A stretch of DNA of 63,213 nt, filler included, from Pelomyxa schiedti (Eukaryota; Protista; Evosea): assembly GCA_020536535.1 (NCBI GenBank). It is 7 parts of 7 records of this genome, joined end to end, with 100 filler letters (N's around TTAATTAATTAA, not from the genome) between each part and the next. Parts side by side here need not be neighbours in the genome. Positions count along the whole stretch, not along the records: positions 1 to 29,643 come from JAHLWZ010000483.1; 6 more parts are not named here. One strand, written 5' to 3'. Below the pieces are notes generated by a model. That model saw nothing but the letters and a program-made list of their open reading frames with translations, was not told where the DNA came from and made no database searches. Each line of letters opens with the position of its first letter. Within the stretch, counting starts at the first letter, position 1. Shown here piece by piece: positions 8,920 to 29,366 of the stretch. Made by a program: the position numbers and the translations under genes.

Positions 8920-11504
8920 TTACACGTCTTCGTTAGAGATAATCACGTGCCCATTTCCCCTCGCGCTGCCGTGCATCCTTGTGTTGGGCGACCACCTCCA
9001 GAAAGATCCCCCTCCGCCGCCCCCGCCGCCCCCGCCCACCAGCCTCGCCCCTGGGCCTCCCCCGCTGAACCCGCCCCCGCCTCCCCCGCAGCACTCGTCC
9101 GCGAGGCTCCCCCCGCCGCCGCCGCCAAACCCCCCGGTGGCGATGGTCCCCCCCGAGCAGTCCGGGGCGCCCCCTCCGCCGTGGCCCCCGTTCAGCGGGG
9201 AGATTCCGCTGGCGCTGCCCCCCATCCCGTTGGTCAGCCACCCTGCCCCGGCCCCCGCCTCTCCCCACAGGTATCTGACCTGCAGTTCCGCGCATGTGCC
9301 CAGGGGGGTGATGGTGTCCCTGGGGATGCTGTTGCTGGTGTTATCCCCCCCCTCGCCACTGGCGCCGCCGTGGCCATGCACACCTCCACCGCTGAGCAGG
9401 GAGGTCCCGTGTGTGCCGTTGGGCGATAGGCTGGCATGCATGCCGTTGGAGTGCTGGCCGGCGCCACCTCCGCCTCCTGCACATAGGAGGACCTTGCCGT
9501 TGGTGTTCCAGTATGTGGACCTCCAGGGTTCGGGATTGGGGCTCAGAACCACTCCTGACTCCCATACAAATGTGCCACCTCCACCTCCTCCAGTCCTCTG
9601 GCTGGAGCCACCTTGCTGCCCAACTAGGATATTGAGCACTTTGCCCTCATCCATTTGCAGTACAACTGAAACCACTGCTCCCACGCCACCTGTGGTGCTG
9701 TATGAATTTCCCCCACTGGCTCCAACTGCTGTGATTTTCCAGGTGCTGCTTATTGGAACTGTCCACTGCTGGATTCCTCTTGCAAGCCTCACATTCGATT
9801 GCAGTGGCTCTTTGTAGTCAACTAGTGTTGGAGGAACTTGTTGAACCCCGTTGCAACAAGTGAACGTGAAGGAGTGCACTTCCCTTTCCGGTGTTCTGGG
9901 AACCTGAATGAGCTCTGGTATTGGTTTTGGTACTACTGGACATGTAGGTAGTCTTCTCTTGGTTCTTTGTGGAGGAGGTGGTGGAGGCGGTGGAGGGGGT
10001 GGAATGGGTGATGAAATGAGGGACATTTGCCTAATGGATTCCAGCAGGGAAGGGTTTCCGGGCCAGCTAATCTGAGGAAAATGACTGGGCCCAATGGCAG
10101 ACAGGTCAACACTCTCTGTGCACATTGAATTGAGGATTCCGGTGAGTTGTTCCAGCTTTTCTCGGCTTCGGAGGAAAACTGGTACGTGCGGTACAGAGGC
10201 AGATGCTGATGCAGAAGCAGCAGTAAAACCCGCTCCAGAGGGAGAAAAGGAGGAATTGTATGCACATTGGAGGTACTCCTGCAAGAACTTTGTGGAAGCA
10301 GAGTGTAGGCCAGCTCCTTTGCATACATAATCCCTCTGGGTCTGTAATTCCGTTAGTAAGTGCTTCCTTTTTTGCTGTGCCTCATCCATCAAGGTGTCAA
10401 AAAAAGAGGTTATATCTCTTTCAACTTGGTCATTGAGCCGTTGCCAACTTTGGGTTCTGTTGTCCAAGGAATCTAATGCAGAACTGACCTGATTCATAAA
10501 CAAGGTATAGACCTCGCGTGCAGATACAAGCTGCTTGATAATTCTATCATGTGCATCTGACAGAGATAAGCACTCGCGAAGGTGGTCTCTGTGCTTTCCG
10601 AACTGAGTACATGAAGGGCATATGAGAGCTTTGCAGTTGCCGCAATAAAGAGTCAGTTGTTGAGAGTGTTCTTGGCATGTAAAGCTCTTTCCTACCTGGA
10701 AGTCGTTGAGGCTTTTCTTTGTATGACCACGCTGGAATGCAAATTTATGAGAGGCAGAGAAGCAATCTTCGCACAGCGGGGAATCGTTGCATTGACTACA
10801 GAAGAATGTAGCCTGTTTTCCACAATCACCGGCACACAGAGGATACTCCGTGCAAACGGTGGATTCCTCAGNNNNNNNNNNNNNNNNNNNNNNNNNNNNN
10901 NNNNNNNNNNNNNNNNNNNNNNNNNNNNNNNNNNNNNNNNNNNNNNNNNNNNNNNNNNNNNNNNNNNNNNNGAGGCAGAGAAGCAATCTTCGCACAGCGG
11001 GGAATCGTTGCATTGACTACAGAAGAATGTAGCCTGTTTTCCACAATCACCGGCACACAGAGGATACTCCGTGCAAACGGTGGATTCCTCAGGACATTGT
11101 GGGACAACAACAATACACCGCTTCATAGCCTCTTTCACAGCTTTGTCAACACACCTTTCTTGAGTGAGTGGATGAGCCAAAAAAAAAAAAAAATTCAAAA
11201 AAAGTCCCACACACGATGATGGTTCAGAAAAGTCCACATTGATGTTGATTACATCGCTGCACTTTGGGCACTTGACTCCCACAATGCAGGACCCGGAATT
11301 GCAGTCAGCGATTCCCCGTGCGGCAACAACCCAGCGGTGAGCCACAGCCACCCCGCAGTTGACGCACGACGTCATCCCACAACAGGGCCACGTCACCGCC
11401 TCAATGGCACCGCCGCCGCCGCCGCTGCCGGCACCGCGGCACACTCCACAACGCCACATTCCCTCCCTGTTAGCCTCGCCAACTGTACTGCTCGTTAATT
11501 GCAT
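8920..11504 (-). CDS. TRIM-like protein: RING-like, B-box 1, B-box 2, coiled coil, Pro linker, ALK/LTK-type glycine-rich domain
   Basis: CGVC..PCCG..CVNC..CPKC; CAGDCGKQATFFCSQC..CEDCFSASH; CQEHSQQLTLYCGNCKALICPSCTQFGKHRDH; FTCC..GIQQWTVPISSTWKITAVGASGG..VLNILVGQQGG..GGGGGGTFVW. The 121-bp duplication around the 10872-10971 gap indicates contiguity. Confidence 0.85.
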
Positions 11505-11657: not shown

Positions 11658-12887
11658 CTATAGGAGGATGCCTAGGGTTATTGCTACTGCAATTGCAACT
11701 ACAATGGCGAGGGCGATGAACATGATTATGCAGAGCTTGCTGCGTGATTTTTTGACACTTTCGTGTGCGGCTCCAAGTTCCTCGACACCTTTCTCCACAG
11801 CTACGTCCGCTCCAATGATGTCGTCCTCGACCTTATCTTGTGTGAAGTGTGAGTTATGGGTCCGCTGGGTTCCCGTGTGTGTTCTATTTTGGGGGGCAAC
11901 ATACTGACGAGTTCTTGTTGTTCGGAAATAAGTTTAGCCAAGTCGTGAACGATGTCATTCACCGCAACTATCTCGGTCTCTAGGGATTGAATAGAATCAT
12001 TTCGGTCCAGTATCAACTGGTCATTGAAGTCAAGCTGATTTCCGACTTGTTCTATCTCATTTCTTGACAAATTAAAGTTGGTATTGTTATTTATGATGAA
12101 CAAAAGATTGCGGTACCTTTGAGCATCTAGTAGCGGCGTTCGCTCCGCTTCACCTTCATCTCTGAGTTCAATTACTCCACTTTGATAAGTGTATTAACAA
12201 TACCTCGCTAGGCTATGCTTCAATGGAATAGGCTGAGCAGCTTTTGCCTTTGCCTGTGTGCCCAGTTTTCCAAATGTCTCACTGTACCGCATGAGGTCTA
12301 CACGAAGTCTCTCTCGCCGGGCCTTTATCTACAAATATCCTCTTCAGAAAGGAATACTATGTGGGTGGGAGGAACCTCTTTTTCCGAGTATCCATCACAT
12401 GCAGTGACTGGAAGTAGTAGTATCGACTTAAAAAGAACCGCCCCGTCTCTGCATTGCTTCTCGCATTGAGAAAGTAGTGCAAACCTTTTTTTTTTGTTTT
12501 TGATAAGGTTGGGAGTTATAAAGAAAAGAATAAACTAGGTACATTCTGGCTCTGTTTTCTTTTGAATCTCTGCTGGTTCCCATCATTTCCAGGAGTTCTG
12601 TTACATTCCCTTCGATTTGAATAATATTGTCTATCTATTCCATCGTTAGGCCTCCTGGCAACCCTATTTGACCACGTCACCATCATCTGCAGCCGATTCA
12701 ATTGTGAGATTATTTTCTCTGTGGGCTCGTCAACAACTATTCCCGCGGAGTGCGAGGAACTCACAGTGACGCCGCTAGAGAGCCCCGAATGCGAATTAGG
12801 GGATGAAAATGACGTCGGAGAGGCAGCACCCCCTCCTCGCGACAGAGGTTTCGCGTTGGGGTTGTTGGCCAAATCATCAAAGCTCAT
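11658..12887 (-). CDS. syntaxin (Qa-SNARE), syntaxin-7/12/PEP12-like, multi-exon
   Basis: SNARE motif ILDRNDSIQSLETEIVAVNDIVHDLAKLISEQQE..DVAVEKGVEELGAARK followed by a C-terminal TM segment CIIMFIALAIVVAIAVAITLGILL*. Confidence 0.88.
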
Positions 12888-13057
12888 TTCTGCCTCACCC
12901 CTGTCTCTTCGGCTTTTTCTTGTCTGCGAAGCGTCTGCTGGGGTTCCCCTAATTCAGTTTGGGTGATGGTTTTGGCCAAGATGTAGGCAAGACGCCCAAA
13001 TTCAATTTGGGTGGAGCTCCATTGCGTGAGATTCGATCTAAAGTGCAAGCAACCTCA

Positions 13058-13138
13058 CCCTGCCACGGAGGAGACGGGGGTTCGACTCCCCCCTTGTGCA
13101 AATTCCAGAAGCACAAGTGGTCTAACGGCATGATTCCT
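13058..13138 (+). tRNA. circularly permuted tRNA-Gly(GCC): 3' half 13058-13100, 10-nt spacer, 5' half 13111-13138
   Basis: joining 5' half + 3' half gives a 71-nt cloverleaf with 7/7 acceptor stem (GCACAAG/CTTGTGC), D arm with GG, 5/5 anticodon stem CCTCC/GGAGG, loop CTGCCAC, 5/5 T stem with TTCGACT and discriminator A; no 5' half is visible upstream. Confidence 0.85.
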
Positions 13139-13727
13139 TATGGTTGCTTGTGCGCTCCCTTGAGACGCTAATCACTCCAAACGAAAAATGTCTCTCTGGG
13201 ATTCAGATTGAGCTCTGTCCTCACCCCCACCCCTTGTTCTTTTTTTTTTTTGTCGTCCATTTCTTTACAACGCCTGTTGTGCTGTCAAAGTGTCCGTCTG
13301 CGACAGGTGCCAAAGATCCAGTGTTCATCACATTTAAAATCGATTTTCAGGAAATAAATAAGAAGGTGAGGAGTGACGTCGTGTGGCGATATAATATATT
13401 GGTCGTGTGAGGACGCATGTGGAATCTGTTGCTTGTGGTGCCTACGTGGTTGCCTTCTTTGCTTAACAGTATAGCAATAGCAATTATTTACGGTGGATAC
13501 AATGGTTGGTCCTTTTTTTTTTTCCCCTCCCCCGTCTTCCTCCTCTTGTGGTTTTTGCAAATCGCGTTGTTTTTTTTGCATTACAAATGGAGCCTTGACT
13601 TTTTTTTTCCCTTCCTTCCTACGGAATTCTTTCTTTGTGGCATGCTGACCGATTGATTAATAGTATCACCACCAATGGGTATAGTACATTTACTACCTTT
13701 TTTTTTTTTTTTTGTTCCCTTTCTTAC

Positions 13728-18190: not shown

Positions 18191-20685
18191 TCAGCAGCTG
18201 CAAATGCTGTCAACGTGTTCCTTTGTCATCAGTCCTCTGGCACCGAGCTCCTTGGCAAACCACTGCTCCACTTTGGTACCGTAGGCGATCTGATCCCTGA
18301 ATGATGGGATCGAGGTGCCTTGCTTGTTGTACGGCACATCAGGCGATGCACCACTCTTCAGAAGCGCATTCAGCGTGTGGGAATTCAAGTTGCTTTGATG
18401 CAGAACCTTGGCCATTATGGCACCGGCAACATCAGTACTGAAGGAGGGCGACTTGGCCAGTTCCAGGATCACCTGGGACACTTTGTAGTCATAGTAATTC
18501 TCACACCTCTTGGAGAATAGAGCATCCAAGGCATCACCAGCTGTTGCGGAGGCCCCCTTTTTAGCTAGCAGTGTGCAGCAGTCACTCCAATTGTTCTTGT
18601 GAACAGCAGTTACAAATGGAGTTTGGCCGTTGGGTCCAGTTTCGTTAACATCAGCCCCTGCTGCTAGTACAGCTTCTGCTTTGGCTTCCATGTCATCTTC
18701 TGAGCTGAGTGCTGCACTCACGTAGGTTTTGTGTTCTGGGTGCTTGCTTGTTGGTGCGGATACAAGTGGGGTTGACTTCTCAAACCCCTTGAGGAGGATC
18801 TTGAGAGTATCTGGGTGGCCATACCTTAGCGCTGAGAAAAGAACCTTCTTCTTCTGTTTCCCTTGAAGAATTGTTGGATCAGCACCGGCTGCTAAAAGCC
18901 TCTCAACGGCAAATGAGCCCTTTGAGACGGCAGCAGCCCAGTAAAGTGCTGTGTGGCCTGTTTCATCAGGTTTATTCACGAGAGGCGCAACCTTGGCAAA
19001 CACAACATCAAAAGCTTCCTTTTGAATTTCCTTGCTGAAACAGAGAGCACGGAACCCTCTCAGCGGGTCAGCCCCATCATCAAGCAGCTTCTGAATGACA
19101 GTAGTGCATTGCCCGAAGCAAGAGGCAGTGAATACATCGAGAATGGGGGCCTTTGGGCCATCGGAAGGGTGTCCTGTGGCTGTAACAGCCAGTGAGAGGT
19201 CCGCACCACTTGACTTTATAACACTAAGTACAAAATCAGAAAGCCCCTGAGTGCATGCTTCCAGAAGAGGAGTGACTTGGTACTGGCAATCTCTAATAGT
19301 AATAGGAGTGGTGTATGTCATATCAGCGCCAGCTTCAAAGAGTGCTGCAGCACAATGACTTCTTCCCTTCTGCCGAATAGCTTGGGACATCAGCCTCATC
19401 TTCCGCTCTGTTAGTAGGTCAGAGTTGATGTCAATAGCCTTGCTTGAGACTGCATGATTGACTAAAATCTTGAATACATTAATTCCAGCTTCCAAGGCAT
19501 AGTCCCAAGCTGTTTGACCAGATTGGCTCTTTATAGTTGTGTCACCGCCGGCCTCCAGCAACGCTTTCACTGCCATTGGGTTGGATTTGCAGATAGCGGC
19601 GATAAGAGGAGTTGAGGTTCCAACTCTCTTGATAAAGTTGGAGTCAGAGATAGAGCGGGTCATGACTTGGTTTGGGGAAGCGCCGTGCTTGAGCAACTCT
19701 TCAGCAACGAGGGCATCATTTGGCTTGCGGGATTCTATAATTTGGGCATCTCTGTTGAACCGCTCCTCGTTTGTGTAGTCTGGGTCCTCTCTGTCAAACA
19801 CCATCCAAAGTGGAGAAGGATCGCCGGAGATATCGGCACCGCCGGCAATCAACATTTTGACAATATCTAGGCTACAGGCGCGGAAACAGGCATAAGCCAA
19901 TGGTGGGACGTTACTGCCTAGCCTCCACGTCTTGAGAATCTCCCACTTACATGGCCGCTCTTGAAGAAGTAACTTTACTGTGGGTACAGAATCTGTTTTC
20001 ATGGCTTCATAAAGTTGCCTGACTTGATCCGCAATGTAACCCTCGGGGAGTGTCCAATTTATCAGCAAGTGAACTTTCCCGGATGTTACTCCCTTGCACA
20101 GTTTGTTAGCCATCCTGAATGAAAAAATAAGCAAGCTTACCTTGAGGTCTATCCACACATCGTTGTCAACATTGGAAGGGTAGCTGAACACATCCAAATC
20201 AAAGTTCCCAAGTTTATCACTTCCAATGAAGTCTTTATCCTGTGCGTACTTAAGTTATGTATGAGGAAAAGTACAAGGGTTACCCAGCACATCAAATGAA
20301 TGAGTTCATTTTCCGCCAAGGAAAGGGAAGCAAATTTTTCATTCCACTGGAAGTAATGTAAGAAAAAGAAATCGAAGTTACGACGTTCACACACTGTAGG
20401 GTTGAGGTTCTTATCAATAACTTTTGTGCGCAATTTCTTGTTCTTCCCGTACACTAACTCAACGTATGGGTCTATCACAAATTGCCAATTAGTCCCGATA
20501 TTAATAATTGATCCCTAATTTAAATTTTTTATTTTTTATATCAAATTTTTGTACAAGATAAGAGTTTTCAAATGCAGACGGAACGAGCACACACCCGAGG
20601 AGCCATTTGAGTCCGCGGAAATCAGGTCCTTGGCCTCAACAACAGTAATTGATGCCTCAAATGTGAGGGCACTTGCACTTGCCAT
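18191..20685 (-). CDS. C2-domain plus ankyrin-repeat protein
   Basis: spliced N-terminus ITVVEAKDLISADSNGSS/DPYV..RTKVIDKNLNP; about 10 ankyrin-like repeats (TPLIAAI, TALYWAA, GADVNETGPNGQTPF) in the large exon. Confidence 0.85.
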
Positions 20686-26401: not shown

Positions 26402-26539
26402 ATCAAACACTAAAATAGAGTTACTGTCGGATTAAATTGCTTAGTTCTTCTGTCTGGTTTAAAGGATTTACAAACCAAACAGCAAACTTGCTTATGTTTG
26501 TTTATTTTTCAAGCCCCCTTGAAACAAGCGTCGTATTGT

Positions 26540-28733
26540 TTAGAGGAACTTGAAAAATAAACAAACATCATGGACGTTGGAGAAGCCCTCAACAAAATCA
26601 ATTCTGTCAAGGATTCCAGTCTGTGGTAAGTTAACACAAAGTAATGTGAGAAAGTGCATGCTTGATCCGCATCCATTCTCTCAAATACACAGTCGACTAC
26701 GTGGCTGAGATGTGCTAGCACATTTCTGTTCAATTCGGGATTGCCTTCTTCCACTGACATTCTCTAGAGAGCATATTAGTCACTTTGCTTATTCGGAAGA
26801 AGATTTACCTTCTTTACAACAGCACGAGCCAGGTCGCTGAGTAAATTCGTGAAAACAGGCAGAAAGGAAGGAAAAGTGTACAATATGAGTTCCTTTGAGA
26901 GAGTACCATCGCCAGTTGGGTCCCAAATCTCAAATAACTCTGCGAGGGCGAATAAGTAAATCCCTTGCTGGAGGAAAAGAACTGTTTAGTTTGCTCTCTG
27001 TAAAACAATTATGCAGTTGGCATAAATTCAAAAAGAGTACCCATATTTCCGGCTCGAAAAAGGGTGTCGGTGAGAAAAAAGTCCTTCAGCTCCATTTTCC
27101 TGTGTTTAGTTGATATTATTTTGCTTGGAATAATAAAACGCAGAGTGACAAACCCGGTGCTCAAAGGATCGAAATAGTGAAACATCTGAGAATGTAAGTG
27201 CGACCGAAATTTGGAGTGCCTATGCACACATTTTCAGCTATTTCTGGCATGGTAAAGTTGTTGATTGCCACTGTAAATTCGTTGTAGGAAACCTTCCCAT
27301 CCCTCTCGGATGCTCTTCTTAGTCTCTTGTATACAATATCCCCTTTTGGTGTATCCATTTACAAGTCAACAAATAGCGGCATACTTTTCTCTTCGGGAAG
27401 TACCAAGAATGTCCCTATTAAATTAAATAATTAATACGTTGCGTTGCCTGTGAAACAAAAAAAGGGGAAAACTGGTGAACCCATAATAACAAGTGCCTAC
27501 CATTAGAACGTGGTCGTGTTGGTGTTGCGCAACAACAATAGTTACCCGGACCCAACGCACTTCCCATAAACTTGCTTATGAAAACCGATCACCACGACTC
27601 CCAGCTTCCCCCCAAATACCACACAATCAACACTATCGGCTGAATATCCCCCTTCAGGGGCTAACACAACTACATGAACTCCCGTGCAGGTCGAGGCCTT
27701 TGCATCATTTTATCATGAAAACCAAATATCCGCATCACCTTCTCAATGCAGTGTTTCCCAGTTTGGTCAAAGAAAAATCCAAGACAACCGTATCGACACC
27801 AACAACCAATAACGAAGTAATGAGGGCACCACCCCACCTTTTCGAGGTCAATGATTAATTGATGGGTTATGCCGTTATGTTAAGCTCTAAACTAAAGTTG
27901 TAAATACAGAATGTGCTTAATTTATGGGTTACCCTGTGCCCGTGGATGATGTCAATAGAGGGTCTGTATGTCGAAGCCTCGTGTGAGGTTTTTTGGGAGT
28001 TTTTCTTCTGGGCAATATGCTGGTCTATTCTTGCAGTGTTGATTCATGGTGCATCTGGCGCTGTGGAACTACTTTCAACAAGGGGAGAAGCGCCTGATAA
28101 TCGCAATGAAGAGAGCCCCACTGAGCACGACGTAGTTATATGGGTTACAGAGACCGCTGTGTACTTGCCTGTCATTGTCTACGGTGCCATTCAGTGAGTA
28201 AAAGCTCTTGTTTAAAATATGTCGAACTAAGTCGCACCAACGAAACAGCATTCCAGAATTTATGAAACAACACTGCTCACTCCCACAGACTGTGATGGTC
28301 TTCACTTGTTATGCTTTGTTCTGTTGCCGATGGCTCTGGGCCCTGTCCGGTTCCTTCGAAATCCTCCTGGCAGAAATCAAAAACTGCATCCACAAACGCA
28401 CACAAGTAGCTGATGATGTTGCCACCGTGTGACGCACTCACCAAAAAAAGCGGCATCCCCCTTGCCCTGATTTTTTTTTGATCGTTCATTCTCACTCATT
28501 CGTGAAACTGATTGAGGGATGAAGGGGAGCTCACTAGGGTTAGTCGGGGACACACGCACATGGGAGCGCAAGTGGCAGGGCGACATACGACCGGGGCATG
28601 TGCTCGACGCGCGCAGCCAGATCGTAGCACTGGCAGCACGGGGGCGGGGACGAGGGAGCGTGGGTGTGGGCGGCGAGCAGGGAGAGGGCGCCGAGGGTGC
28701 GGACGTACTGTCTGAGGTGGTGCTAAGGCTCAT
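26540..28733 (-). CDS. multi-EF-hand calcium-binding protein, many short exons (5' extent uncertain)
   Basis: EF-like loops ERDGKVSYNEF, FDPLSTGFVTL, WDPTGDGTLSKE and DADQTGILDRIDF (the last after splicing 26621-26661). Confidence 0.6.
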
Positions 28734-28821
28734 TAGGCCCTATGTGGTGTCGACCCACGCCATCGTGGTAATACGCCTAAGGAACATTGGTGGCATGTGG
28801 GTTGTGGGACTGTCTCAGACT

Positions 28822-28825
<4 letters not shown>

Positions 28826-28862
<37 letters not shown>
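28826..28862. repeat. (GT)n microsatellite, about 18 units
   Basis: direct reading. Confidence 0.95.
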
Positions 28863-28864
<2 letters not shown>

Positions 28865-29366
28865 TCACAGTGTGGGGGTCATCCACCGAGAAAACTTCCC
28901 ACACATTCTCACTAGTCTCAATTGCGAAGTGGTTGGAATCAACCTTTTCCACATTGCAGAACTGGTGCTTGAGAGTGACCTGCTCACCAGAAGCTGGGTA
29001 CATTAAGCAGCCAAGTCCCGGCCTGTAGCTTCCAATGGATTTGGTGTAAACAGCCGGGTTCCCATCTCTGGTAACAAACAGGTGTTCTGATGGTGCCGAA
29101 TTGTACCATTTGACCATGTCTTGCGTAAATATAAGTGACCCTCGTGCGGCGTAGGTCAGCTTCACGTTGACTTTCCAAAGCCAAGTCGCCCTGAGTGATG
29201 AACCCATAATTGTGAGCTCGTCGGTTCCGTCCTCTGGTGACTGCCACAGCTCCAGGTGCCAACGGCACCCGCTTCGCTGCCCTGATGACAACGGCAGAAT
29301 CACGGGAACGCGGTGATCTACTTCATCTGTGTTCTTGCTTATGTTGATGTAGCTTGTGCACTCCAT
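28858..29366 (-). CDS. hypothetical protein, 5'/middle part, truncated by (CA)n; its natural C-terminus is at 2375-2588
   Basis: open frame; 121-bp identity with 2589-2709. Confidence 0.55.

Follow-up and report, generated by a model that had tools for sequence, protein, structure and literature searches.

Circularly permuted tRNA genes encode the tRNA's 3′ half upstream of its 5′ half. A review from 2014 lists 34 such genes, with junctions at 15/16, 20/21, 37/38, 50/51, and 59/60, in Cyanidioschyzon merolae, the prasinophytes Ostreococcus and Micromonas, the Bigelowiella nucleomorph, and Thermofilum pendens. Later work adds Auxenochlorella and the nucleomorphs of other chlorarachniophytes, and a 2026 review names no further lineages (for the algal and nucleomorph genes, see Soma 2007; Maruyama 2010; PMC3978253; PMC12633428). 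In the papers searched, such genes come solely from red and green algae, nucleomorphs of green-algal descent, and one crenarchaeon. In the permuted, split, and ectopic-intron tRNAs described so far, the junction sequences form a bulge-helix-bulge (BHB), that is, two 3-nt bulges separated by 4 bp. Permuted tRNA genes have been discussed as an ancient trait, or as an algal peculiarity tied to BHB-recognizing splicing endonucleases. Here we describe a candidate permuted tRNA-Gly(GCC) gene with its junction at 29/30 from Pelomyxa schiedti, an anaerobic archamoeba (Archamoebae, Amoebozoa). It lies on contig JAHLWZ010000483.1 of assembly GCA_020536535.1, which makes up positions 1-29,643 of the window, the 63,213-nt stretch of DNA analyzed here; all coordinates refer to this stretch. 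Full-text searches of the literature found no permuted tRNA gene from Amoebozoa and no junction at 29/30, as the initial annotation of this DNA had already supposed.

The P. schiedti locus resembles the algal and nucleomorph permuted genes in that both halves share one strand, with the 3′ half placed upstream, and CCA is not encoded. The acceptor stem is closed by a spacer (10 nt here, 1-74 nt there) that contains no terminator, a T stretch follows downstream, and leader and trailer pair with each other, which brings the ends close. Unlike the algal genes, however, it belongs to a heterotrophic amoebozoan, its junction lies at 29/30 in the anticodon stem, it has no BHB or BHB-like motif, and its RNA suggests that the acceptor end can open before the junction is joined. 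What is new relative to the known permuted genes is the lineage, the junction, the missing BHB, and possibly the order of processing.

Among archaeal tRNAs, the trans-spliced split tRNA-Lys(CUU) from Nanoarchaeum equitans and Staphylothermus likewise has its junction in the anticodon stem, at 30/31, and a perfect flank pairing of 13 nt, comparable to the 12-bp helix that would hold the cut P. schiedti RNA together (PMC3218864). It is the closest documented counterpart to 29/30, which the initial annotation had taken for a known archaeal intron or split position. The split tRNA-Lys(CUU) is encoded by separate, distant genes and relies on a canonical hBHBh′ motif and the archaeal heterotetrameric endonuclease (PMC3218864), whereas the two P. 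schiedti halves lie 10 nt apart within one eukaryotic locus that lacks a BHB. Measured against split tRNAs of the Nanoarchaeum type in general, the 12 contiguous flank pairs agree with the usual pairing of ∼12-14 nt, but the halves share one strand and no promoter-like gap separates them. The permuted tRNA-iMet and tRNA-Tyr genes of Thermofilum pendens have the same permuted order and a very short intervening sequence, but they are archaeal, are joined at 59/60, encode CCA, and possess a BHB (PMC3218864). A different kind of likeness is offered by YrlA RNAs (RF02553; bioRxiv 10.1101/312249), in which a stem formed by the paired ends enters at the place of the anticodon stem and is accompanied by a T arm, a closed acceptor stem, and a D arm. 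YrlA RNAs are, however, bacterial and linked to Ro60/Rsr, they have no anticodon loop, and they are not made into tRNA (bioRxiv 10.1101/312249).

On the plus strand, the order of the P. schiedti gene is leader, 3′ half, spacer, 5′ half, and trailer. Its elements are the following, each with the evidence that supports it:

13009-13042, plus strand: distal leader, present in RNA (RNA contig 13009-13097 of run X5; minimum free energy [MFE] fold)
13043-13054, plus strand: leader strand of the flank helix, GTGCAAGCAACC (sequence; pairing; random-pair test)
13055-13057, plus strand: UCA, leader side of a 3x3 internal loop, with a putative cut after 13057 (sequence; fold)
13058-13100, plus strand: tRNA 3′ half, positions 30-73, 43 nt (window sequence; ARAGORN; T-arm match in Rfam scans)
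13101-13110, plus strand: spacer AATTCCAGAA, 10 nt, closing the acceptor stem in the precursor (sequence; ARAGORN; fold)
13111-13138, plus strand: tRNA 5′ half, positions 1-29, 28 nt (sequence; ARAGORN; RNA 5′ end at 13111)
13139-13141, plus strand: UAU, trailer side of the 3x3 internal loop, with a putative cut before 13139 (sequence; fold)
13142-13153, plus strand: trailer strand of the flank helix, GGTTGCTTGTGC (sequence; pairing; random-pair test)
13154-13234, plus strand: distal trailer, present in RNA (X5 contig 8; RNA 3′-OH at 13234)
13240-13251, plus strand: run of 12 T (T12), likely an RNA polymerase III (Pol III) terminator (sequence)

The 3′ half contains the remaining part of the anticodon stem, the loop CUGCCAC, the variable loop AGAC, the T arm with a perfect B-box-like GGTTCGACTCC, the 3′ strand of the acceptor stem, and A73. 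A73 is of the eukaryotic type, and no CCA is encoded behind it. The 5′ half provides the 5′ strand of the acceptor stem, U8, the D arm (including G18G19), and the anticodon-stem nucleotides C27-U29. Once rejoined, the two halves abut exactly, with zero overlap and zero gap. The resulting 71-mer forms a cloverleaf that ARAGORN calls tRNA-Gly(gcc), in line with the initial annotation, which had proposed that this tRNA-Gly(GCC) gene is circularly permuted, with a junction at about 29/30, and whose coordinates and sequences all agree with the window. Watson-Crick pairs fill the acceptor stem (7/7), the T stem (5/5), and the anticodon stem (5/5), and the conserved nucleotides U8, A14, G18G19, U33, A37, G53-T54-T55-C56, A58, and C61 are present. 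ARAGORN keeps the rejoined tRNA up to 115% of its default score threshold, which equals the result for a bacterial tRNA-Gly used as control. The junction is at 29/30 or, less neatly, at 30/31: with the first U of the trailer as U30 opposite G40, ARAGORN again finds a tRNA.

In its genomic order, the gene goes unrecognized. ARAGORN found zero tRNAs in the unrearranged DNA of positions 1-29643, and Rfam made no tRNA call on the unrearranged gene, with only T-arm fragments labeled as tmRNA and weak matches to Tymo-TLS and YrlA. The 3′ half precedes the 5′ half on the same strand with a short intervening sequence, as in other permuted genes. The window contains a single copy of the 28-nt 5′ half, whereas 0 matches are expected by chance. 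Our preferred reading is that of an expressed, working nuclear circularly permuted tRNA-Gly(GCC) gene of P. schiedti whose ends are joined without a BHB, and we assign it a probability of roughly 0.55. On this reading, it would be the first candidate outside Archaeplastida-derived genomes and Archaea.

Transcripts of the locus were found among the assembled contigs of a tagmented single-cell RNA library (run X5), which was made from a sample other than that of the genome. Single-cell transcriptomes of P. schiedti from 2023 were prepared by in vitro tailing with poly(A) polymerase, followed by a modified Smart-seq2 protocol (PMC10579272), and we took X4 and X5 to be libraries of this study. This procedure records the true ends, 5′ as well as 3′, of RNA that carries no poly(A) tail. 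One X5 contig covers 13009-13097, that is, leader and 3′ half, and ends in the Nextera adapter. Another one, contig 8, covers 13111-13234 (124 nt) and consists of the 5′ half and 96 nt of trailer; the two are of similar depth. At its upstream end, contig 8 shows the Nextera adapter and GTACATGGG, directly followed by 13111, which is position 1 of the tRNA. We take GTACATGGG to be the 3′ end of the Smart-seq2 template-switching oligonucleotide. Since the template switch marks this position, 13111 is a genuine RNA 5′ end. Strand invasion by the GGG of the oligonucleotide is not the explanation, because the bases upstream of 13111 are CCAGAA and contain no GGG. The 124-nt RNA therefore begins exactly where RNase P would cut.

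At the other end, 13234 is followed by five A residues and the Nextera adapter. Because the library was A-tailed in vitro, 13234 represents a genuine 3′-OH end; for the same reason, the A5 tail cannot be taken as natural polyadenylation or as the mark of a Pol II transcript, and this idea was dismissed. The RNA ends 6 nt before the T12 run, whose role as a terminator we presume from established Pol III biology. The sequence between 13009 and 13239 contains no run of at least four T, and the spacer at 13101-13110 has no T run either. A T stretch at 13240-13251 downstream of an RNA 3′ end at 13234 matches the arrangement of other permuted genes.

The permuted order could in principle have been produced by the way the genome was obtained. 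The P. schiedti assembly was derived from single cells amplified by multiple displacement amplification (MDA), and tRNA receives no mention in the genome paper. In a second DNA run of the same sample, a contig of 13 kb extends across 12400-13687 and differs at one position. This difference is a C>T change at 12976 (window versus second-run contig), either a polymorphism or an amplification error. The X5 contigs, which come from another cell, contain both adjacencies that define the permutation, the leader next to position 30 and position 29 next to the trailer. Because they show both joints independently, an amplification chimera is excluded for these two, and we conclude that the locus is real, that it is transcribed, and that its RNA is cut at the place expected for RNase P. 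The cell needs a tRNA-Gly(GCC), since GGU and GGC together account for 48% of the glycine codons in five long open reading frames (ORFs) of the window.

The leader strand 13043-13054 pairs with the trailer strand 13142-13153 in 12 contiguous pairs, including two G-U pairs, with UCA/UAU between this helix and the junction. These are the same pairs as those of the 12-bp helix with two G-U pairs and a 3x3 loop described in the initial annotation. In 200,000 pairs of random 30-mers drawn from the window, at least 12 contiguous pairs in any of 49 offset combinations were reached in 0.06% of cases (∼6e-4). In the predicted structures, the flank helix meets the anticodon stem precisely at the 29/30 nick and would thereby create a three-way junction; it might also continue, past mismatches of U-U and C-A, into an A-U pair right at the junction. 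The centroid folds of both 13030-13166 and 13001-13240 show the permuted architecture with flank helix, T arm, and spacer-closed acceptor stem, and the flank helix dominates the predicted ensemble. For the longer RNA, the fold has a z score of -2.26. Imposing the full permuted cloverleaf as a constraint costs 4.7 kcal/mol relative to the MFE structure, a penalty that is ordinary for tRNAs. In the MFE structure of 13001-13240, 13009-13014 (GGGUGG) pairs with 13227-13232 (CCACCC) as a terminal helix. The limits of RNA coverage, 13009 and 13234, match this helix and would leave a 2-nt 3′ overhang; of these two limits, only 13234 was mapped by an added tail, while 13009 is merely the start of a contig.

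The flanks also bear on the origin of the gene. Tandem duplication of a tRNA gene, followed by loss of the outer parts, has been proposed as the source of permuted tRNA genes. In P. schiedti, CTTGTGC, the acceptor 3′ strand, recurs unchanged within the trailer strand. The first seven nucleotides of the leader (GTGCAAG) match GCACAAG, the acceptor 5′ strand, except for two transitions, which turn a C-G and an A-U pair into U-G and G-U, so that pairing is kept. From this sequence comparison, an ancestral tandem duplication is the probable source of the flank helix, which would be what remains of its outer acceptor strands. A duplication accounts neither for the inner five pairs (CAACC/GGTTG) nor for break points that are exactly complementary. 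If the leader is such a relic, then its two changes in seven positions, next to a tRNA body that keeps every stem, suggest selection on the body. The flank helix also has the size of an acceptor/T-stem minihelix (a 7-bp acceptor copy plus 5 bp), and its GGTTG resembles the start of the T stem and loop, GGTTC. As a speculation, such a minihelix-like structure might guide trimming of the RNase P/Z type at its outer end (13043, 13154).

Several results weigh against a working gene. One concerns the recognition of the ends, where we used the BHB register of the canonical 37/38 position (a helix, a 4-nt H strand, a 3-nt bulge cut after its second base, and a further helix). An exhaustive search of 13000-13245 yielded no strict BHB with cuts at 13138/13058 or within one nucleotide of them, and of the four H pairs, the register for 29/30 permits just one. 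Relaxing the motif to an H of 3-6 bp and bulges of 1-6 nt produced only a 3-bp UGA/UCA pairing. A BHB of mirror topology was not found either; the only result was a 4-bp pairing of trailer and anticodon of the wrong handedness. The locus thus lacks the BHB that characterizes permuted tRNA genes of the type described by Soma 2007. That no strict BHB could be drawn had been noted before, and the absence now extends to the relaxed forms. Because no BHB forms, end recognition must be nonstandard and unlike that of the permuted, split, or intron-containing tRNAs described so far, if it occurs at all. In the 4-bp pairing just mentioned, UGGU of the trailer (13141-13144) is complementary to GCCA (G34-A37, 13062-13065) in the anticodon loop. 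This pairing recalls the helix between anticodon and intron, although its topology is wrong for a BHB.

Further points of this kind come from the RNA, from the search for relatives, and from the tRNA itself. No X5 contig bridges the spacer (13098-13110), and none contains the back-joint from 13138 to 13058 (the ligated 29/30 junction) or a circle, although contigs cannot prove absence in either case. Tagmented libraries of the X5 type are poor at capturing mature tRNA, so that the silence of the contigs proves nothing. Other P. schiedti sequence was reached via paralogues of the window proteins and amounts to eight loci with ∼118 kb of nonduplicate DNA. A T-arm/acceptor scan, which recovers the target, gave no convincing permuted candidate in these ∼118 kb. 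ARAGORN found zero tRNAs of any kind in them, a result that is uninformative on tRNA-Gly(GCC). In Mastigamoeba, 219 tRNA genes have been reported, which presumably corresponds to roughly one per 260 kb with the genome size that we assume. Given this density, the absence of tRNAs from ∼118 kb is unsurprising, and conventional tRNA-Gly(GCC) genes located beyond the scanned sequence may supply the tRNA. Comparative support was also lacking: an exact 35-mer of the 3′ half has no match in the metagenome contigs of the Joint Genome Institute (JGI), and a relaxed anticodon-arm/T-arm pattern retrieved from JGI metagenomes nothing but three bacterial tRNA-Gly genes of the ordinary kind, in which CCA is encoded. 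The core of the rejoined tRNA is slightly unusual, with A15/C48 in place of the standard Levitt pair and with U13-U22. Finally, seven of the 12 flank pairs could have been inherited from the duplication without selection.

An alternative is an expressed relic of a tandem tRNA-Gly(GCC) duplication that has lost its outer parts. RNase P would still find an acceptor/T-arm to cut, but the halves would never be joined, their products would be degraded, and conventional genes would supply the tRNA. Leftover outer copies would look like the flanks found here, where the leader resembles the acceptor 5′ strand and the trailer repeats its 3′ counterpart exactly. The missing BHB, RNA contigs that show unjoined pieces only, and the slightly atypical A15/C48 and U13-U22 likewise speak for a relic. 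But such a relic requires two independent deletions that ended at the exactly complementary positions 29 and 30, a coincidence of about 1 in 70. Moreover, acceptor relics leave CAACC/GGTTG, the inner 5 bp of the flank helix, unexplained, and every stem of the tRNA body is intact even though the putative relic has diverged. We regard this explanation as unlikely. For a tRNA-derived repeat, that is, a dispersed pseudogene or short interspersed nuclear element (SINE), multiple copies would be expected; the unit occurs once in the window, and the part of the remaining genome that was scanned, ∼118 kb of nonduplicate sequence from other P. schiedti contigs, contains none.

The RNA could also be a noncoding tRNA mimic that remains unligated and, by analogy with YrlA, recruits tRNA-binding factors. 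YrlA gives Rfam's only full-length match to the gene (13046-13153), YrlA RNAs are described as resembling circularly permuted tRNAs, and RNase P cuts the one whose acceptor stem has 7 bp. Since YrlA has a similar architecture and is cleaved by RNase P, the cut at position 1 alone does not prove that a tRNA is made, and the agreement of the transcript limits 13009/13234 with the predicted terminal helix would equally suit a structured RNA of this sort. The match, however, has 15.4 bits (E = 1.2), far below the gathering score of 69 that marks membership in RF02553. In place of the Ro60 stem without anticodon loop, there is a complete anticodon stem-loop here, with the full CUGCCAC loop and a stem completed precisely across the junction. 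No Ro60-binding motif was recognized (a Ro60 gene was not searched for in the genome), and a cut of the RNase P type would split this RNA in two. On balance, a mimic appears quite improbable. We consider it very improbable that the permuted order is absent from the chromosome and reflects an assembly or whole-genome-amplification chimera. An assembly of MDA-amplified single cells is prone to chimeras, and the joint at the spacer is covered only by DNA contigs of one sample. Yet RNA contigs from a different cell show both the leader joined to position 30 and position 29 joined to the trailer, and in a chimera, A73 would not come to lie 10 nt from G1, nor would exactly complementary halves and an added 12-bp flank helix result.

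For a working permuted tRNA-Gly(GCC) gene, the data can be arranged into the following model. A plus-strand precursor of roughly 13009-13234 would be transcribed, its transcription probably ending at T12 and its 3′ end then being trimmed back. In the folded precursor, the two halves, 3′ upstream and 5′ downstream, would together form the spacer-closed acceptor stem, the T arm, and the D arm, and the 12-bp leader/trailer helix would place position 29 beside position 30 inside the anticodon stem. RNase P would be responsible for the RNA end observed at position 1, RNase Z would cut after A73, and CCA would be added. An endonuclease and a ligase of the tRNA-splicing type would remove leader and trailer at the 3x3 loop and seal the nick between 29 and 30. 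The captured RNA, cut at position 1, still carries the trailer; at least some molecules therefore have an open acceptor end at a time when the junction is not yet joined. If the cut at position 1 comes first, it would generate a two-piece intermediate like that of the archaeal split tRNAs, and not follow the circle-first order proposed for Cyanidioschyzon. The putative ligation of 29 to 30 in the P. schiedti tRNA-Gly is our central claim, and it would point to an undescribed maturation pathway for a permuted tRNA. We only tentatively propose the complete route, in which an essential tRNA is produced independently of a BHB, with RNase P acting first, a two-piece complex held by the 12-bp flank helix as intermediate, and a putative endonuclease/ligase pair removing the flanks and sealing 29/30. 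Such a route is perhaps also used in other Archamoebae.

JAHLWZ010000483.1 is nuclear DNA of P. schiedti; its genes have introns and encode eukaryotic domains. The protein encoded at 18191-20197, an ankyrin/C2 protein, is 97% identical to a P. schiedti protein, which bears out the amoebozoan host assumed in the initial annotation. The tRNA unit is located in a 530-nt gap between two divergent protein genes, and a pair of repeats lies on its upstream side:

12887, minus strand: start (ATG) of a syntaxin gene (gene calls on the contig)
12947-12963 and 12995-13011, no strand assigned: 17-nt near-palindrome CCCNAATTCARTTTGGG in two copies 48 nt apart (repeat and pattern search)
13417, plus strand: start of a gene for a 176-aa membrane protein (gene calls on the contig)

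The second copy of CCCNAATTCARTTTGGG ends 32 nt before the leader helix, and a partial third copy is found at 13201-13210. Judged by its sequence, the pair is possibly a site for a dimeric factor or an upstream promoter element, either of the tRNA gene or of the divergent syntaxin gene. A target-site duplication around the unit, with ATTCAATTTG at 13000 and ATTCAGATTG at 13201, was considered and rejected: it is imperfect, has no adjacent poly(A), and belongs to the palindromic motif that is also present at 12952. A 70-aa ORF runs across the gene (12959-13171), and a protein-word search found no protein that shares words with it.

Some features of the wider sequence are recorded here for completeness. 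The B-box protein encoded at 8920-11013 on the minus strand has, at its C terminus, a glycine-rich ALK/LTK-type domain (PF12810), and P. schiedti has a small family of PF12810-type proteins fused to B-box, TRAF/Sina zinc-finger, or PI3/PI4-kinase domains. The first-exon region of the B-box gene includes a run of N (a scaffold gap) at ∼10870-10970, which appears as ∼34 X in ORF translations. Contigs JAHLWZ010000636.1 and JAHLWZ010000836.1 share genes in the same order over >40 kb with nearly equal product lengths; they are uncollapsed haplotypes or a duplicate assembly. Two minus-strand Rfam matches are probably meaningless, namely, a long hairpin at 26480-26587 that weakly matches the plant MIR5185 model (30 bits versus 102) and a CA-repeat region at 28820-28906 that matches a viral sisRNA model far below threshold.

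If the P. schiedti gene is what we propose, permutation of tRNA genes arose or persisted in a second eukaryotic supergroup, the junction can lie inside a tRNA helix, and the ends can be defined without a BHB. The latter would call into question both gene finders based on the BHB and the assumed universality of this signal. The complete BHB-independent route, if true, would mean that tRNA gene permutation originated independently outside the algae and that eukaryotic tRNA splicing has a further, new way of recognizing ends. Annotation by tRNAscan-SE, ARAGORN, and Rfam will miss such genes, and isoacceptors that seem to be missing from protists may be hidden in this way. Since P. schiedti is in culture and A-tailed single-cell RNA libraries exist, the question is directly testable in the organism itself.

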